Of a stretch of 34,059 bases of DNA, positions 26,873 to 34,059 are shown piece by piece. The DNA comes from Pelomyxa schiedti (Eukaryota > Protista > Evosea), in contig JAHLWZ010000980.1 of the NCBI GenBank assembly GCA_020536535.1, positions 1 through 34,059 of the forward strand, read 5' to 3'. Within the stretch, counting starts at the first letter, position 1, and every line of letters starts with the position of its first letter. The notes below the pieces were generated by a model. That model had not been told where the DNA came from. It saw only the letters and a program-made list of their open reading frames with translations, and ran no database searches. Both the position numbers and the translations under genes were made by a program.

Positions 26873-26939
26873 TCAACGGCCGTTGAATGAATTTTGATTT
26901 CTTTCTTTGCTTCCGGGAATCCCAAAGACTTTTGATGTG
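26873..26939. promoter_or_regulatory. Very short (~67 bp) head-to-head intergenic region; presumed shared promoter
   Basis: ATG at 26872(-) and probable ATG at 26940(+). Function inferred from position only. Confidence 0.35.
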
Positions 26940-28357
26940 ATGCGCCGCGCAGAGGTAGCGCTTCGCGTGTCGCTTTCATCGCACCAGGCCGCTCGTGAGC
27001 AGCTTCTGGCGCTGGCCATGTCGTCTCACCCGCGGTGCGGGGGCCGCAGCCCCGCACGGGCCTTCATGTCGCTGCCGCCGGTGGCCACGGCGCCCCTGTG
27101 GGAGTGGTGCCTGCGCGGGTCCGAGGTGGTCTTGGGCCTGTGCGCGTGGGTCCCGCGGTGCCGGCCAAACTCGGTGTGCTACTTCACGGTCGGGGTGTCG
27201 GCGGCCCTGCTGGGCGTCACAAGGGACCTGAGGCCGACTTACGTCGGTAATTTCGACGCGACTCTGGTGACTAGGTTGGTGCCCATTGNNNNNNNNNNNN
27301 NNNNNNNNNNNNNNNNNNNNNNNNNNNNNNNNNNNNNNNNNNNNNNNNNNNNNNNNNNNNNNNNNNNNNNNNNNNNNNNNNNNNNNNNAACTCGGTGTGC
27401 TACTTCACGGTCGGGGTGTCGGCGGCCCTGCTGGGCGTCACAAGGGACCTGAGGCCGACTTACGTCGGTAATTTCGACGCGACTCTGGTGACTAGGTTGG
27501 TGCCCATTGATCCTGGCCGCGTGGTAGTCACTGAGCCCAGGCTATCCCTTCTCAGGATGTTGTTGGTTGTACTTGGAAGGAAGCCGGTGGAGCTTGCCAC
27601 TGCTCCGCGTGCCCAGCAGTTCTGTGCGCATTATGGGAATGAGAGATGGTGGGTGCACTGTGACTACACTTATCTGACAATTGCCAACCTTGTGATTCGT
27701 GGTAGCAATCCCACAATTACAAAGGTCGTGTGCCGGGATGCCTTTCCTAAGACTGAGCCTCCTATGGTTTGCACCTCTATTTTCCTCAGCAACCGAACGA
27801 ATCTTGATGAAGCAGTGCTTGTTCTGTTTGACTCTTACAGAAGGAACCATTTCCTTCTTGTTATTGATCTCAAACAGACATACACCACTGGTGCCGTTAC
27901 TGTTCTGAGCCTCACAAAGTGCTTTGGGCCACCAGGCCTTTTTTCCGGTAGCCTCAGCATGATTAAATCAACTGGCCAGCGTGCTTTGTTTGTGAGAACC
28001 AGAGTTACAGAATGTGAGTCTGTTTGGGAAGCCGAAGAGTCCTCTGGCACCATGACGCCAATTTCCAGTGACATCAGTGGATTGTCGCAGCTGAGCCATT
28101 ACCTGTTTTGTATCTCCAAGAAAGATGGCTCTGCTGAGGTATGGGACTGCAACAACACTGCCGCACCACTGAGAGTCATTCCAGCCAAACCTAATTCCAG
28201 CTTGGCGGTTATGGGGATGTTCCCCAGTTTGGTGCTACGCAAATTCCAGGGCAAGACTACTATTGAAATAGAAGAAGATTCTGGTTGCCAGGTTGCCACT
28301 GTTTCACTTCCCCGTGAGTTTTCAAACTTTGATTTTACTGTTACTTCCTTCTTGTGA
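26940..28357 (+). CDS. Intronless orphan-family protein (~398 aa after removing the assembly duplication); N-terminal AREQLLAL..HPRCGGRSPAR motif, beta-rich C-terminus
   Basis: ORFs 26907-27452 and 27395-28357 join in frame once the gap plus one 121-bp copy (221 nt) is removed, giving 1197 nt = 399 codons. Confidence 0.75.
27168..27509. other. Scaffold gap (100 N, 27289-27388) flanked by an exact 121-bp duplication; unmerged contig overlap
   Basis: 27168-27288 is identical to 27389-27509, the same geometry as the gap at 6438. Confidence 0.9.
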
Positions 28358-28408: not shown

Positions 28409-29752
28409 TTAGTAGCGGGATTGGCCCAGTAACTTTGCATTCTTAGTCCAGTACTCAAGGGACTTGTTGCGGCCACCAATGACACACTGGCATTCTGAAA
28501 TGATGGTTCCAGTCTTGCACCCCTTGATGAATTCAATCACATTGTCCTTGCACCTCAAGTTCTGTAGGACCTCACAGTAATTTGGAGCCCACTTTCTCAC
28601 AGGGAGAATTCGACGGGCCACGGTTTGTCTGCTGACCCTCATCGCCAGCTCCCTGCACGTGGTCACATGTGCCAGTGAAACCACTGGTTCTCCTGTTTTT
28701 GGGCTGCTGGTTGCTTCTGGTGGCGCGGAACTGGTGAAATGTGAGTGGTTTGGGACAGTTTTCTAAAGGAAATACACACCTTCCAGGGATGAAAGCTCGC
28801 ACAGAGGACTCTTTCACAACATCCAACCACACAGGATCATCCAGAGCAGCTTCTCTCCAGCTGAAGAATATATTGTAAAGTGTTAGCAGGTTGGAATTTT
28901 GAATATTAAGTCAGAATCACCTCTTGCACACTGTTGACAGAGAAAGCAAAGTCCTCGTGGCTTCAAGGATCTCCGCATAAGACTTTGGTGTTCGTGATTT
29001 TATCGGAAGGTAGTGTTCCGGCCGAAGCTCAATTTCATGCAATCCCCTCTTCATTCTTGAAATCCGAATGTCAAACGACGTTCGGTTGACACAGTCGTAG
29101 TATGCTTGCGAATAATGCTGCTCCCAAATGAGAATCACACGTTTGAATATCCATCCCAGCAAGTCCTTCCCCAGGCTTGGCAGAGTGGTAGAAGCTCCGG
29201 TAGGTCCCGAGGAACAAGCTGGGCTCTAAAAATTATATCAGTTTTCTTCCAGGATCATAGAAACATACCACCACAGGATTTAAAGTGTCGCCAGAAGAAC
29301 TGGTGCCAGTGGTAGCAAGTGAGAGTGCTGCAGTCATTTCCTTTGCTCTCTTGGCCCTCGCCCAAGGAATTACAGAATCCAACCAGGAGTCACAGTTGCC
29401 CATGCACTCGTTGCACAAGTACCGCTCTCCTTTTGGCCGTCGTGGCTTTCTGGAGTCATCAGACATCCTTCTCATGTAACCCCTGTCGCTATTCTTGACG
29501 TGCACCGCACATGAGCTGGGCGCCTAGAAAAAAAGGTTTTTTGATTTCGAAAAAAGGCCATAAAAGAGTGCGTACGTTACGGCATTCGGGGGGGAACCCG
29601 TCGAGCTCCATGGCCAGTACGTCCGTGGCTACTGAATTACGGACCGGCATCTCCCCACCCCTCACGGCGTCGACTGGTTTTTCAGTCCACATCACGAAAT
29701 ATGATGTTGACGACGAGTTGGACACAAACCCACCCCAATTCACCTTCACCAT
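28409..29752 (-). CDS. Tandem family paralogue C (5 exons): GFVSNSSS motif, Cys/His cluster, split F-box-like domain, conserved C-terminal domain
   Basis: Spliced MVKVNWGGFVSNSSSTSYF..ECRN|APSSCAVH..YLCNECMGNCDSW..|..LPSLGKDLLGWIFKRV..TLLSLSTVCK|SWREAALDDPVW..|..CRELAMRVSRQTVARRILPVRKW..KLLGQSRY*. Confidence 0.8.
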
Positions 29753-29967
29753 TTTCCCTTTCGGTTTGTTGTCACCGATGTTCCCTGAAAAAAACAAACA
29801 GGATACTGAGTGATGTTTCTTTGGCAACACAGTCGATTAGATTTGGAGAACGAAGGAAATGAACGTCCAGGGACCCCACTGCGGGGCCTTTGATGATGTT
29901 CGAGATCTCGAAATATGTGTCAGCACAGTACCAGTGTTGTGTGCCTTTCACCAGTCAACACAAAACC

Positions 29968-31251
29968 TTACAGCAGCCGGAAAGAAAGTATTTCCACTGG
30001 GTGTCTCCCCTCATGCCAAGTGAGTGTGAGAAAACTAAGGCCAGTTGTGGAATCAACAAATTCCATTTCTGTTGTGGTCAACGGAAAGCTACCAACAACA
30101 CCCTGTTTGTAGTTGATATGCACCACAATGTCGGGATGCACCAACTGCACCAATGATGTGGAGCCATGCATATCTCCCACTCCACCACACCGATGCACAC
30201 AACAAGGTTTTCCGTCGGTACTGCGTGAGTCATACACGAGCAAATCATTGGTCGCATTGGCAACACTCACAGTTCCCCCAGCCACTGTGCCGTAGGGGAA
30301 CTCAGCCAAGTCCACCTCACCAGTGCCAAGGTGCATCAAGTAACAGAAGGGGGGCGTGTCACATGGAGTATCCAGGTCAGATGCTGTGGTGTTGAACACA
30401 ACAGCAGGGCCTTGTGGTGTGTGCAGGAACCTCTCACCAACAACGAGAGTATTGCCAGGCCAGTTGATATTGCACCTGAGTTCCCTGACAACAACGCAGG
30501 TACGTTTTGTGAAAGAGGCATCCAGGTCGACAGTGACGGCATTCCACTGAGAAAACACCACCGTGAACTCATCTTCACCACCCTTGCACACCAGACCAGT
30601 GAAGTCAACAGCCATGATGGCGTTGTCTCTACCGTTCGGTTCCAGCATGAACTGGGCTGGGTCCCCTTGCAGGAACTTGGCGGCAGGCCACACAAGCAGC
30701 CACAGGGAGCAGCCCTGCTCTGCCAGATTGCTCACCATCACAGCCCACTTGTCGTTGATGCGGATGTGGTGAACCCACGTCGCCGGCGTGAAAGATGCCC
30801 AATCCTCCCTCCCCTTTGTCTGGTCAGAGCCACCAACAAAGTCCACCCTATAGAAGCAGCGGCCCAGGTAGGTGCTGGGCCACGTAATGACCATCGAAGC
30901 CAAGGGCAGGCAGCCAGGCAGCCACCCGCACCCAAAGCACCCCGGCGACGAAAACACCACGGCGGGGGGACGCACCATGCCGAGCGTGGGAGACACGGAG
31001 AACACGACCGTGTCGTAGTTGCTGTTCATGAAATCCACGCGGCGCTTGGCGCAGAAGGTGACGAGGGCTGACTCGTGGAGGACCCAGGAGCGGCCGACGT
31101 TGCCCACGCACGAGGGAGACAGGCACCGCGCGGGGCTGCGCGACGAGCACCGCGGGCCAATGGCCCCGCAACAAAGTGCGACGAACTGGTCCCGTGCATC
31201 AGCCAAACTGTTTACCAAAAACATGTTGTTTAGGCGAAGTGTGGCGCACAT
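29968..31251 (-). CDS. Intronless orphan-family protein (~427 aa from the first ATG); N-terminal ARDQFVAL..GPRCSSRSPAR motif, beta-rich C-terminus
   Basis: Single long ORF 29968-31290 with its first ATG at 31251. Shares the N-terminal motif with the gene at 26940-28357. Confidence 0.75.
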   Translation of the reverse strand: MCATLRLNNMFLVNSLADARDQFVALCCGAIGPRCSSRSPARCLSPSCVGNVGRSWVLHESALVTFCAKRRVDFMNSNYDTVVFSVSPTLGMVRPPAVVFSSPGCFGCGWLPGCLPLASMVITWPSTYLGRCFYRVDFVGGSDQTKGREDWASFTPATWVHHIRINDKWAVMVSNLAEQGCSLWLLVWPAAKFLQGDPAQFMLEPNGRDNAIMAVDFTGLVCKGGEDEFTVVFSQWNAVTVDLDASFTKRTCVVVRELRCNINWPGNTLVVGERFLHTPQGPAVVFNTTASDLDTPCDTPPFCYLMHLGTGEVDLAEFPYGTVAGGTVSVANATNDLLVYDSRSTDGKPCCVHRCGGVGDMHGSTSLVQLVHPDIVVHINYKQGVVGSFPLTTTEMEFVDSTTGLSFLTLTWHEGRHPVEILSFRLL

Positions 31252-31362
31252 AGGCTGGACAACTTCGACGCTGAGGAAAGACTGAACCAAAGTTTATCAA
31301 CGGTAGAGTGTATTTGTTCTCTTCAATGAGAATTCAATTGGAATAAAAAACTCTGTTGTATT

Positions 31363-32668
31363 TCAGGACCTGCCAAGTAATTTAGAGTGTTTCTGCCAGT
31401 ACTCAAGGGACTTGTTGCGGCCACCAATGACACAGCTGCTTTCTGCAATGATGGTTCCAGTCTTGCACTCCTTGATGAATTCAAACACATCATCTTTGTA
31501 CCTCAAATATGGAAGAACTTGATAGTAATTTGGAGCCCACTTTCTCACAGGGAGAATTCCACAAGCAACGGTTTGTCTGCTGACCCTCATTGCCAGCTCC
31601 CTGCACGTTGTCACATGTGCCAGTGAAACGGATTCTTCTGTTATGTTGGTGCTGGTTGCCGCCCTTGGTGTGGAACTGGTGAAATGTGATTTGGGTGAGA
31701 TAGTTTGAGAAAGGAAGTACATATTTCTGGGTATGAATGCTCGCACAGAGGAGTCCTTCAATACGTCAAGCCACACAGGTTCGTCCATAGCAGCTTCTCT
31801 CCAGCTGAATCATTATTTAAGCTTGTAAAGCCAATTAAAGAGAAACGAAATCACCTCTTGCATACTGTTGACAGAGAAAGCAAAGTTACAGTGGCATTGA
31901 GTACCTCTTCGGGAGAATGAGGTGCACGTGCCTGTTTTGGAAGGAGGTGTTCAGGACGAAGCTCAATCTCATGTAATCCCTTTTGAAGTCTGGCAATCCT
32001 AATGTCAAACGACGTTGCGTTCACGCATTTGTAGTAAGCCCGCGAAAACTTCTGCTCCCAGATGAGAATGACATGTTTGAATATCCATCCCAGCAAATCC
32101 TTGCCAAGAACAGGCTGGCAGGCATTCAAGAAAAGTTAGAGGAGCCGACAGAACTCAGTTTGCAGTCTGCAAAGGGGAACATACCACTGAAGGAATTGGG
32201 GTATCAGAGGCTCCAGGTGAGGATCTTACAGTAGGTGCCTTTGCCCTCTTAGCCCGCACCCAAGGAATCACAGAATCCAGCCAAGATTCACACCTTCTCA
32301 TGCACTCGTTGCATATGTATTGTTCTCCATCTGGCCTTTGTGGCCTTGGTACTGCACCCCTCCTCAAGCCAAATATGGAACTGTCGTCACCATCCCTCCT
32401 GGAATGTTCAGCACATCCAATTGGTGCCTGCACCAAACCAAAGGTTTCACCCCAAATGCCATTCATTCATAAAAGCAAGAGACAAGCTCACTTTGCGGCA
32501 CTCCTGTGGAAGGCCTTCGAGCTCATCAGCGAGGATGCTTGTAGCAACGCAATTACGGGCCGGTATTTCAGCACCCCTCACAGCGTCGACTGGTTTTTCA
32601 GTCCACATCACGAAATACGATGTTGACGACGAGTTGGACACAAACCCACCCCAATTCACCTTCACCAT
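31363..32668 (-). CDS. Tandem family paralogue B (5 exons), same architecture as 28409-29752
   Basis: MVKVNWGGFVSNSSSTSYF..ECRK|APIGCAEH..YICNECMRRCESW..|PVLGKDLLGWIFKHV..TLLSLSTVCK|SWREAAMDEPVW..KLLGRS*. Intron positions match paralogue C. Confidence 0.8.
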
Positions 32669-32731
32669 TAATTTATTTTTGTTTTTGAAATATCAAACAG
32701 TTCTCAGAACCATCTTCTCCCAGCCACAGGG

Positions 32732-34059
32732 TTAGAGTTGGGCGATCAATTTTGCATTTCTCCTCCAGTAATCGAGGGAGGGGTTGCCTCCACCAATGAC
32801 ACACTGGCCTTCTGATATTATGGTTCCAGTCTTGCACCCTTTGATGAAATCGAACACATCGTTGCCACAGGGGAGGTGCTGCAGCACCAGGCTGTAATTT
32901 GGAGCCCACTTTCTCACAGGGAGAACTCCACGAGCAACGGTGTGTCTGCTGACCCTCATCGCCAGCTCCCTGCACGTGGTCACATGTGCCAGTGGAATCA
33001 CTGGTTCTCCTGTTTTTGTGCTGCCGGTAGTAGTCGTCGTTGCTGCCGGTGAACTGCACAAAAATGTGAGTGCATTACCGCAGACAATGTAGAATATTCA
33101 AGGACAAACGGGTTGCAGATGAGAGCACAAACCTTCCGGGGATGTATGCTCGCACCAAGGATTCCTTCACAACATCCAACCACACAGGATCATCCAGAGC
33201 AGCTTCTCTCCAGCTGAAGAATATATTAGCAGGTTGAACGCGTGAATATTAGTTCGGAAGAATCACCTCTTGCACACTGTTGACAGAGAAAGCAATGTTC
33301 TAGTGGCTTCAAGGACCTCTTCTGCGGAATTCGGCGTTCGCGATTGTATTGGAAGGTAGTGTTCCGGCCGAAGCTCAATCTCCGGCAAACCCTTGTCCAT
33401 TCGAGCAATCTGAACTTCATAGGGTGTTGAGTTGACACAGTCGTAGTATGCTTGCGAATAATGTTGCTCCCAAATGAGAATTACACGTTTAAATATACAT
33501 CCAAGCAAGTCCTTCCCCAGAACAAAGGTGTTTGTCGTACTCACGGTAGGTTTAGAGGAACCAATTGCACTCTGGAATTATGTTGGATTTGGTTTCTTTC
33601 ACAAGGAGGGTAGATATACCAGGAAGGATTTTACAAACTTGGGAGCTTTGGGAGCCCCACGTGAGTGCCCAGAAGGTGACGGTGCACCAGTCACCTTTGC
33701 TCTCTGAACCCTCACCCACGGAGTCACACGTTCAAGCCAAGAATTGCACCTTGTCGTGCACTCCTTGCACACGTATAGCTCTCCTTCCGGCCGGGGTGGC
33801 CTTGCGGGTATTCTACGGAACATAGACATCATGGCCTCGTCTGCGGTAATGGAATGTTCCGCACATCCACTCGGCCCCTACATTACAACCCAATTTGTCA
33901 TCGTGGGATAACTGAGATGTTACTGCCTTCACGGGTACTGATTGAATCATACACACTTTGCGACACTCAGGAGGGAGACCGTCGAGCTCGTCAGCAAGGG
34001 CACTCGTCGACGCGCAGTTCTCGGCCCCTGGCGTCCCATTCTTTACGGTATCGATCGGT
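32732..34059 (-). CDS. Tandem family paralogue A (5' end outside the window)
   Basis: ..LADELDGLPPECRK|GPSGCAEH..YVCKECTTRCNSW..VLGKDLLGCIFKRV..TLLSLSTVCK|SWREAALDDPVW..CRELAMRVSRHTVARGVLPVRKW..KLIAQL*. Confidence 0.78.

Follow-up and report, generated by a model that had tools for sequence, protein, structure and literature searches.

A phage-type N-terminal head on a tandem F-box-like gene family of Pelomyxa schiedti, and a radical SAM/SPASM enzyme beside phage genes with such heads

Why do tandem nuclear genes of an amoeba begin with a peptide of phage type, and what could that peptide do in a eukaryotic protein? The question is raised by positions 28409-34059 of contig JAHLWZ010000980.1 of Pelomyxa schiedti (assembly GCA_020536535.1), analyzed here as a complete contig of 34,059 bases, which we call the window. 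Three spliced paralogs lie there in tandem on the minus strand, annotated by NCBI as Pelo_15046, Pelo_15047, and Pelo_15048; we named them A, B, and C from high to low coordinates, so that A is Pelo_15048 and C is Pelo_15046. B, with its ATG at 32668, and C, with its ATG at 29752, start with the identical minus-strand peptide MVKVNWGGFVSNSSSTSYFVMW, in agreement with the shared GFVSNSSS-type start that had been read from the sequence alone. We refer to the first 20-27 residues as the head. Judged by profile comparison, this head appears to be the same element as a near-invariant N-terminus of phage proteins, carried by PHROG 7397 and by several groups with unrelated tails. In phages, the genes for headed proteins form arrays, and beside a number of these arrays lies a radical S-adenosylmethionine (SAM)/SPASM enzyme gene whose subtype co-varies with the form of the head.

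The amoebal family and the phage-type head

A, B, and C are real, spliced, tandemly duplicated nuclear genes of P. schiedti. They belong to an annotated family of at least seven members on five contigs (Pelo_15046, 15047, 15048, 17071, 12738, 14380, and 5881), whose dispersed loci are flanked by ordinary eukaryotic genes, including those for leucine-rich repeat, ankyrin, gelsolin/villin, MORN, and metacaspase proteins. With RNA-confirmed GT..AG introns and annotated P. schiedti proteins at NCBI, the sequence-only reading of a eukaryotic, intron-containing, tandemly amplified family holds. DNA identity between the exons of A, B, and C is 61-92%, and a 50-nucleotide (nt) 5′ coding stretch of B and C occurs exactly twice in the window, against zero occurrences expected. 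Exon 1 of A is truncated by the end of the contig. DNA contigs from the source sample extend beyond 34059 into a copy of 32598-32674, after which a copy of a paralog's 3′ end follows. The head copy past 34059 implies that A has the same start as B and C, and the run into a further 3′ end implies an array of at least four members, with at least one additional copy upstream.

The proteins share one layout: the 20-27 residue head, a Cys/His cluster, a conserved middle region with an F-box-like motif at its end, and finally ~100 amino acids (aa) that form a conserved C-terminal domain. The amoebal head follows the consensus M-V-K-x(2-3)-G-F-V-S-N-S-S-S-x-S-Y-[FY]-[VL]-x-W-T-[ED]-x-[PT] and is kept from the same ATG in paralogs that are only 39-54% identical overall. 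Across five loci, the 15 core motif codons show six synonymous changes against one or two conservative replacements. The DNA 5′ of the ATG is unrelated among the family loci, while the intron position after exon 1 is conserved. A head that is kept through synonymous changes, behind unrelated upstream DNA and with a fixed intron position, points to purifying selection at the protein level. Among B, C, and Pelo_17071, the three copies closest to one another, codons 1-32 scarcely differ, synonymous sites included; between B and C there are two synonymous differences in this stretch, as against 21 differences in the next 27 codons. Two segments of nearly identical DNA were observed in paralogs that elsewhere differ by 15-40%: the first 96 nt of exon 1 (32573-32668 and 29657-29752) and ~105 nt of the last exon (about 28590-28700, 31540-31650, and 32910-33020), the latter encoding L-A-H-V-T-T-C-R-E-L...K-W-A-P-N-Y. 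These segments could reflect gene conversion or constraint at the nucleotide level.

A prokaryotic and phage protein family starting with this motif had been mentioned as background to the sequence-only reading, and such a family does exist. A ten-residue degenerate DNA pattern for F-[IV]-[ST]-N-S-S-S-[ST]-S-[FY] was found at 25 viral loci, in ~20 of which the motif stands six residues after a start codon, in the form M-K-[IVT]-[RK]-x-[GD]-F-[VI]-[ST]-N-S-S-S-[ST]-S-[FY]. The fetched loci yielded 97 distinct headed viral open reading frames (ORFs) starting MK-x-R-x-[GD]-F-[VI]-[ST]-N-S-S-S-[ST]-S-[FY], part of which belong to PHROG 7397. In 596 Gb of prokaryote genomes, the same pattern gave 23 loci, ~20 of them wrong-frame or low-complexity noise; the true members were three, in metagenome-assembled genomes (MAGs) of a Desulfobacterales bacterium, a gammaproteobacterium (four copies), and Methanospirillum. 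With 25 viral loci against three true prokaryote members, the family is centered on phages, including T4-like phages of enterobacteria, rather than on the anaerobic bacteria that had been named alongside phages. The Cys pairs that were expected after the motif are present in some phage members, as Cys/His tails.

Headed phage genes occur in tandem arrays of two to six copies, with the same head on unrelated tails. Among the tails are the PHROG 7397 type, some ending in E-G-G-Y, Cys/His tails of RING-like or zinc-ribbon-like form, and further types. The full-length type of ~170 aa is PHROG 7397, whose true members match profile positions 1-170 at E-values of 1e-11 to 1e-15. It was found in T4-like Straboviridae of Cronobacter, Enterobacter, Klebsiella, and Citrobacter (for example, GAP161_111 of Cronobacter phage vB_CsaM_GAP161), and its first 20 residues are almost invariant, with the remainder ~30% identical. 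One subgroup of headed phage proteins (L010:369-752:-, L020:823-1188:-, L053:3001-3570:+, and relatives) shows RING-H2-like or zinc-ribbon-like spacing straight after the head, of the form C-x2-C ... C-x3-H-x2-[HC]-x2-C ... C-P-x-C, which Pfam RING models matched at E-values of 0.02-0.6 only.

Plain searches did not connect the amoebal head with these proteins. A word-indexed homology search with the ORF around exon 1 gave one candidate and no match, and tblastn of exon 1 against 50,697 phage records returned noise only (E-values of 6-7), the low-complexity filter probably masking the Ser run. Back-translated 8-mer scans of the viral and prokaryote collections gave no confirmed relatives. With phmmer, exon 1 had three true matches among 1.84 billion representatives, all from Pelomyxa and none outside it; six further matches were false, five being bacterial-type Y-L-V-V-W...T-R-G repeats and one a long Ser/Pro-rich repeat protein. 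A search with the PHROG 7397 profile aligned residues 7-34 with profile positions 5-32 at an E-value of 0.03-0.04 only.

Profile-profile comparison, in contrast, gave a probability of 95-97% overall, with E-values of about 1e-8 to 1e-10, over the first 20-27 residues. Aligning amoebal with phage profiles in hhalign yielded 95.7% and an E-value of 9.5e-9 over 20 columns, and 95.3% and 2e-8 over 27 columns, from the Met through a shared Pro. The local hhalign score of 58.8 compares with a maximum of 22.2 in 100 column shuffles, and with a maximum of 40.5 (median, 28.3) in 100 shuffles in which the Ser run was kept fixed. These controls assign about half of the signal to the Ser run and the other half to the flanking K, G, F, V, N, aromatic, V, and P positions; as the observed score lies above all 100 shuffles with the Ser run kept, the likeness is not a Ser-rich coincidence. 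A lack of significant prokaryotic or phage hits, which the sequence-only reading had named as the mark of such a coincidence, was seen in the plain searches, whereas the profile-profile comparison was significant above the shuffles.

The similarity is confined to the head. Full-length family profiles aligned in hhalign over columns 1-28 and no more, and the Cys/His part compared with the phage Zn-type subgroup gave low confidence beyond the head. A second-domain match of the Pelomyxa profile on a Methanospirillum ORF was rejected as too weak (4.7 bits). With PHROG 7397, the Pelomyxa proteins share the same head in the same place, followed by the same hydrophobic strand and Pro, and they fit the operational phage head pattern [KR]-x(1-4)-[FY]-[IVM]-[ST]-N-S-S-S at the extreme N-terminus. 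They lack the rest of that profile, including its C-terminal F-x-Y-S-D-N-D-G, E-H-G, and terminal His motifs, and have instead a Cys/His cluster, an F-box, and introns. Tandem occurrence is common to both groups of headed genes, though in the amoeba the copies have common tails as well, which those of the phage arrays do not. Of the suggestion that a module had been acquired horizontally and placed on an F-box, what is supported is a phage-type head on an amplified F-box family; the shared part spans only ~27 residues and not ~130 aa. A horizontal origin of the head is plausible, given a family confined to one species, a head abundant in phages, and a genome with many prokaryote-type genes.

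A radical SAM/SPASM enzyme beside the phage arrays

Nine of the 80 neighbor ORFs belong to PHROG 7293, the sole recurrent family among them; these neighbors are 340-360 aa long and match the Pfam Radical_SAM and SPASM models. A hidden Markov model of the enzyme placed it in ~15 loci within about 1.1 kb of an array, 12 of these within about 320 nt, and the Methanospirillum MAG is among the ~15. Heads of the form G-F-[VI]-S-N pair with the enzyme subtype E-I-S-x-x-C...C-Y-K, and heads of the form D-F-V-T-N with the subtype G-[VI]-M-G-H-C...C-Y-Q. In T4-like phages, the headed gene and the enzyme gene are present in the same genomes. The motif CX7CX2C is common in the phage enzyme family (L007, L016, L020, and L025), including the T4-like gene GuL6_166.

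SPASM-class radical SAM enzymes are mostly peptide or protein maturases that recognize a conserved segment of their substrate. The nearest NCBIfam models of the phage enzyme represent maturases of peptides, proteins, or cofactors (MftC, PqqE, WgkB, GeoRSP, NirJ, and the tungsten-enzyme maturase), all matched far below their cut-offs. The phage loci resemble the precursors of ribosomally synthesized and post-translationally modified peptides (RiPPs; MftA/MftC, PqqA/PqqE, and SCIFF) and the anSME sulfatases in having paralogs that agree in one short N-terminal segment, vary in the rest, and lie next to the gene of a SPASM-class enzyme. They differ in that the headed products are not short peptides: they are proteins of 60-190 aa in phages and of ~350 aa in the amoeba. 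Unlike the curated maturase systems, moreover, the phage enzyme falls under every NCBIfam cut-off, and in Pelomyxa there is no adjacent enzyme. An N-terminal segment that is invariant and exposed, followed by a variable rest and accompanied by a neighboring enzyme that co-varies with it, suggests that the head may be the enzyme's docking or modification site.

Some other features of the phage loci were recorded. The radical SAM/SPASM gene at L070:222-1923:+ is seemingly interrupted at the Cys motif, and the ORF downstream opens with a stretch whose last residues, V-H-N, precede C-Y-K-G-N, a pattern resembling an intein end. At L009:1153-2196:-, two headed genes are separated from the radical SAM/SPASM gene by a DHH/DHHA1 phosphoesterase gene. 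Genes for metal-dependent phosphohydrolases, thymidylate synthases, and helicases turn up repeatedly in the vicinity of headed arrays, which places the arrays in replication and nucleotide-metabolism regions of phage genomes. Literature searches with the motif strings and on phage SPASM systems found nothing relevant.

F-box-like motif, Cys/His cluster, and gene structure in the window

The F-box proposed for the family is supported, as full-length annotated members score above the 24.3-bit gathering score of PF12937 (F-box-like), with 28.8 bits for P0001, 26.2 for P0002, and 34.1 for P0005. PF12937 is also precomputed for P0010 and P0013 of the window, and the match covers only positions 18-45 of the 47 in the model. 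Single exons gave no Pfam F-box match, as the motif is split by an intron. Single-exon scans of Pfam, NCBIfam, PADLOC, and PDB sequences returned nothing usable, and an AbGHMP match to one exon was dismissed (E-value, 0.2). Language-model look-alikes of the family proteins were weak F-box clusters too. Like the F-box proteins that act as Skp1-cullin-F-box (SCF) adaptors, the Pelomyxa proteins have an F-box-like motif followed by a conserved C-terminal domain, the usual place of substrate-binding domains; in contrast to them, a phage-type head and a Cys/His cluster precede the F-box, which begins only ~200 residues into the protein.

The conserved Cys/His cluster, likewise reported earlier, was recovered in all three copies from the exons and annotated proteins, with C-x6-C-x2-H spanning the exon 1/2 junction and C-x2-C-x3-C within exon 2. 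A ClpX-type C4 zinc finger (PF06689) matched the second Cys pair of B exon 2 only, with 18.3 bits and an E-value of 0.002 against a gathering score of 27 bits, and it was not found in scans of P0001, P0002, and P0005. An AlphaFold2 (AF2) model of Pelo_15046 built from seven sequences was poor (predicted local distance difference test [pLDDT] of 39).

Exon coordinates were obtained by mapping the annotated proteins back onto the window, and all exons lie on the minus strand. In paralog C (Pelo_15046, P0010, 379 aa), exon 1 (29576-29752) holds the ATG, the phage-type head (codons 1-27), and the first Cys of the cluster, and exon 2 (29269-29523) holds its C-x2-H and C-x2-C-x3-C parts. Exon 3 (28921-29225) encodes the conserved middle region and the first part of the F-box-like motif, and exon 4 (28780-28860) encodes the second part (W-R-E-A-A...V-W). 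The conserved C-terminal domain and the stop codon are in exon 5 (28409-28730), for which searches of Pfam, PHROG, and PDB gave no match. The introns at 29226-29268, 28861-28920, and 28731-28779 were confirmed by RNA contigs. For the last of these, intron 4, RNA contigs show two acceptors (28730 and 28690), skipping 49 or 89 nt; the longer skip costs 40 coding nt, from which a frameshift would result.

Paralog B (Pelo_15047, P0012) has its head in exon 1 (32492-32668), followed by exons 2-5 within 31363-32427 (32427-32185, 32114-31855, 31804-about 31722, and about 31675-31363); an RNA contig confirmed the introns at 32115-32184 and 31805-31854. The NCBI model of this gene begins at the internal Met 21 (32608) and so omits the head. 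Paralog A (Pelo_15048, P0013) occupies 32732-34059, with an exon 1 remnant at 34059-33957 and further exons at 33877-33620, 33571-33267, 33213-33133, and 33053-32732; its introns at 33214-33266 and 33054-33132 were confirmed by RNA contigs. Because the contig ends inside exon 1, the N-terminus of the NCBI model of A is misframed over ~53 residues (33620-34059). The public annotation is hereby corrected for two of the three genes, at the 5′ ends of A and B. Across A, B, and C, seven GT..AG introns (introns 2-4) are supported by single-cell RNA contigs.

The stop codon of A and the ATG of B are only 63 nt apart (32669-32731), and an RNA contig of A extends to 32702; given this gap, the promoter of B must overlap the 3′ end of A, or A and B are co-transcribed. 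Between B and C lies an unrelated 440-aa ORF (29968-31290, minus strand), and below C a convergent plus-strand gene (26907-28357). Pfam and PHROG gave no match for either. A short stretch rich in Pro, Arg, and Cys, G-x-R-C-x-x-R-S-P-A-R, is present in both, with no overall similarity between the two in BLASTP (E-value of about 1). Inside the plus-strand gene, a run of Ns is flanked by a 121-nt direct repeat of 100% identity (27168-27288 and 27389-27509), which looks like an assembly gap artifact.

What the head may do

From the sequence alone, a substrate-binding or catalytic head for SCF had been suggested; the neighborhood of the phage genes points rather to a tag for a radical SAM/SPASM enzyme. 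We tentatively favor the reading that a head recognized or modified by a radical SAM enzyme is coupled to SCF through the F-box scaffold. In phages, the head would be an exposed docking and modification site for an oxygen-sensitive radical SAM/SPASM enzyme, RiPP-like or sulfatase-maturase-like, and the activity proper to each protein would reside in its tail. Capture from a phage or prokaryote gene probably brought the head onto an amoebal F-box scaffold, where a radical-SAM-recognized or modified N-terminus would then be joined to an SCF-type ubiquitin ligase adaptor. The modification, the transfer, and the binding to Skp1 are what we infer here. The strictly anaerobic life of Pelomyxa allows oxygen-labile radical SAM enzymes to function there, and the head of its proteins is of the G-F-V-S-N type. 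In a stronger form of the proposal, Pelomyxa would have domesticated both halves of a phage substrate-maturase pair, with a CX7CX2C radical SAM/SPASM enzyme covalently modifying the heads of the F-box adaptors, which strikes us as unlikely.

Several observations weigh against radical SAM recognition of the head. Single-sequence searches (word search, tblastn, two pattern scans, and exhaustive phmmer) link the amoeba to no phage or prokaryote, and only 20-27 residues are common, with no confident alignment beyond ~residue 28. The window and the 4-10 kb around each of the five Pelomyxa loci examined showed no radical SAM gene; a 329-aa gene neighboring Pelo_12738 is not a radical SAM enzyme. On the phage side, about half of the loci have no enzyme in the short fetched flanks, many of which are too short to judge, and in T4-like phages the headed gene and the enzyme are ~20 kb apart. 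Adjacency and co-variation could also come in part from the shared ancestry of related phages. RNA contigs over exon 1 of B or C were not found, with RNA present in only 8-10 of 30 bins. Finally, head residues 13-20 form a buried strand in the phage model, so conservation of the head is perhaps partly structural.

This last point leads to the main rival, rather doubtful in our view, in which the head has a structural or ligand-binding role only. It would be a first strand plus a Ser-rich anion- or metal-binding loop in a small fold, or an unmodified peptide binding the radical SAM enzyme or some other partner, and in Pelomyxa part of a Zn-containing N-terminal domain. The AF2 model of a phage member, built from 30 sequences (pLDDT of 86.8), places residues 13-20 as a strand in a sheet with strands 135-142 and 163-167 (pLDDT of 90-96), and the conserved D143, E153, and H169 could make a site with the Ser loop. 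Many phage tails also have a second "strand + acidic loop" element, and the C-terminal exon in Pelomyxa has K-T-G-T-I-I-x-E. Against a purely structural role, the identical head stands on tails of clearly unrelated sequence. The invariant residues 1-10 are the sole poorly defined part of the model (pLDDT of 49), as would be expected of an exposed tag, and K2, R4, and G6 are invariant though they lie in this poorly modeled tail. The fold has no known PDB relative from which a ligand could be inferred: Foldseek gave E-values of at least 0.6 and VIA gave Z scores of at most 3.8 for PDB, BFVD gave no relative, and matches in the ESM Atlas were to its own viral clusters only. The phage profile matched class C acid phosphatases among PDB sequences at an E-value of 0.07 only, which we did not trust. 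A structural role alone also leaves unexplained the tight adjacency of the enzyme and its co-variation with the head.

It is quite improbable that the likeness between the amoebal and phage heads is convergent or fortuitous, the head being a Pelomyxa invention such as a phosphorylation or glycosylation patch or a degron. What the two have in common is a short stretch that owes half its score to the Ser run, HMMER bit scores reach only 10-18, exhaustive phmmer and the annotated proteins gave no relatives outside P. schiedti, and the spacing from the motif to the Met differs by one or two residues between amoeba and phage. Set against this, the non-Ser positions match as well (K, G, F, V, N, aromatic, V, and later P), none of the 100 flank shuffles reached the observed score, and the motif is at the extreme N-terminus in both groups. 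The exact 10-residue pattern, in addition, occurs almost only in headed ORFs of viral contigs, and its matches in the 596 Gb of prokaryotes are for the most part wrong-frame noise. That the head is absent from the mature product, being removed or bypassed by a start further downstream as in the NCBI model of B, has very little probability: exon 1 has no RNA contig coverage and the stop of A is only 63 nt from the ATG of B, but RNA coverage is thin overall, the NCBI models of five other members (Pelo_15046, 17071, 12738, 5881, and 14380) begin at the head, and in five loci of unrelated upstream DNA both ATG and head persist through synonymous changes, despite the start of Pelo_15047 at internal Met 21.

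The phage arrays with identical heads on unrelated tails, the adjacency of a radical SAM/SPASM enzyme, and the co-variation of head and enzyme subtype are new here. Phage early-region proteins with this head make up a large orphan class without fold relatives, and the link to an enzyme turns headed proteins of "function unknown" into a directly testable hypothesis. If the stronger form of the proposal, with both halves of the phage pair domesticated, holds true, the same chemistry would account for hundreds of orphan headed phage proteins, and the Pelomyxa proteins would be the first radical-SAM-matured protein family tied to a eukaryotic ubiquitin ligase. With such a head, the expanded F-box family of this anaerobic amoeba would be one of few instances in which a eukaryote has taken over the protein-modification logic of phages.

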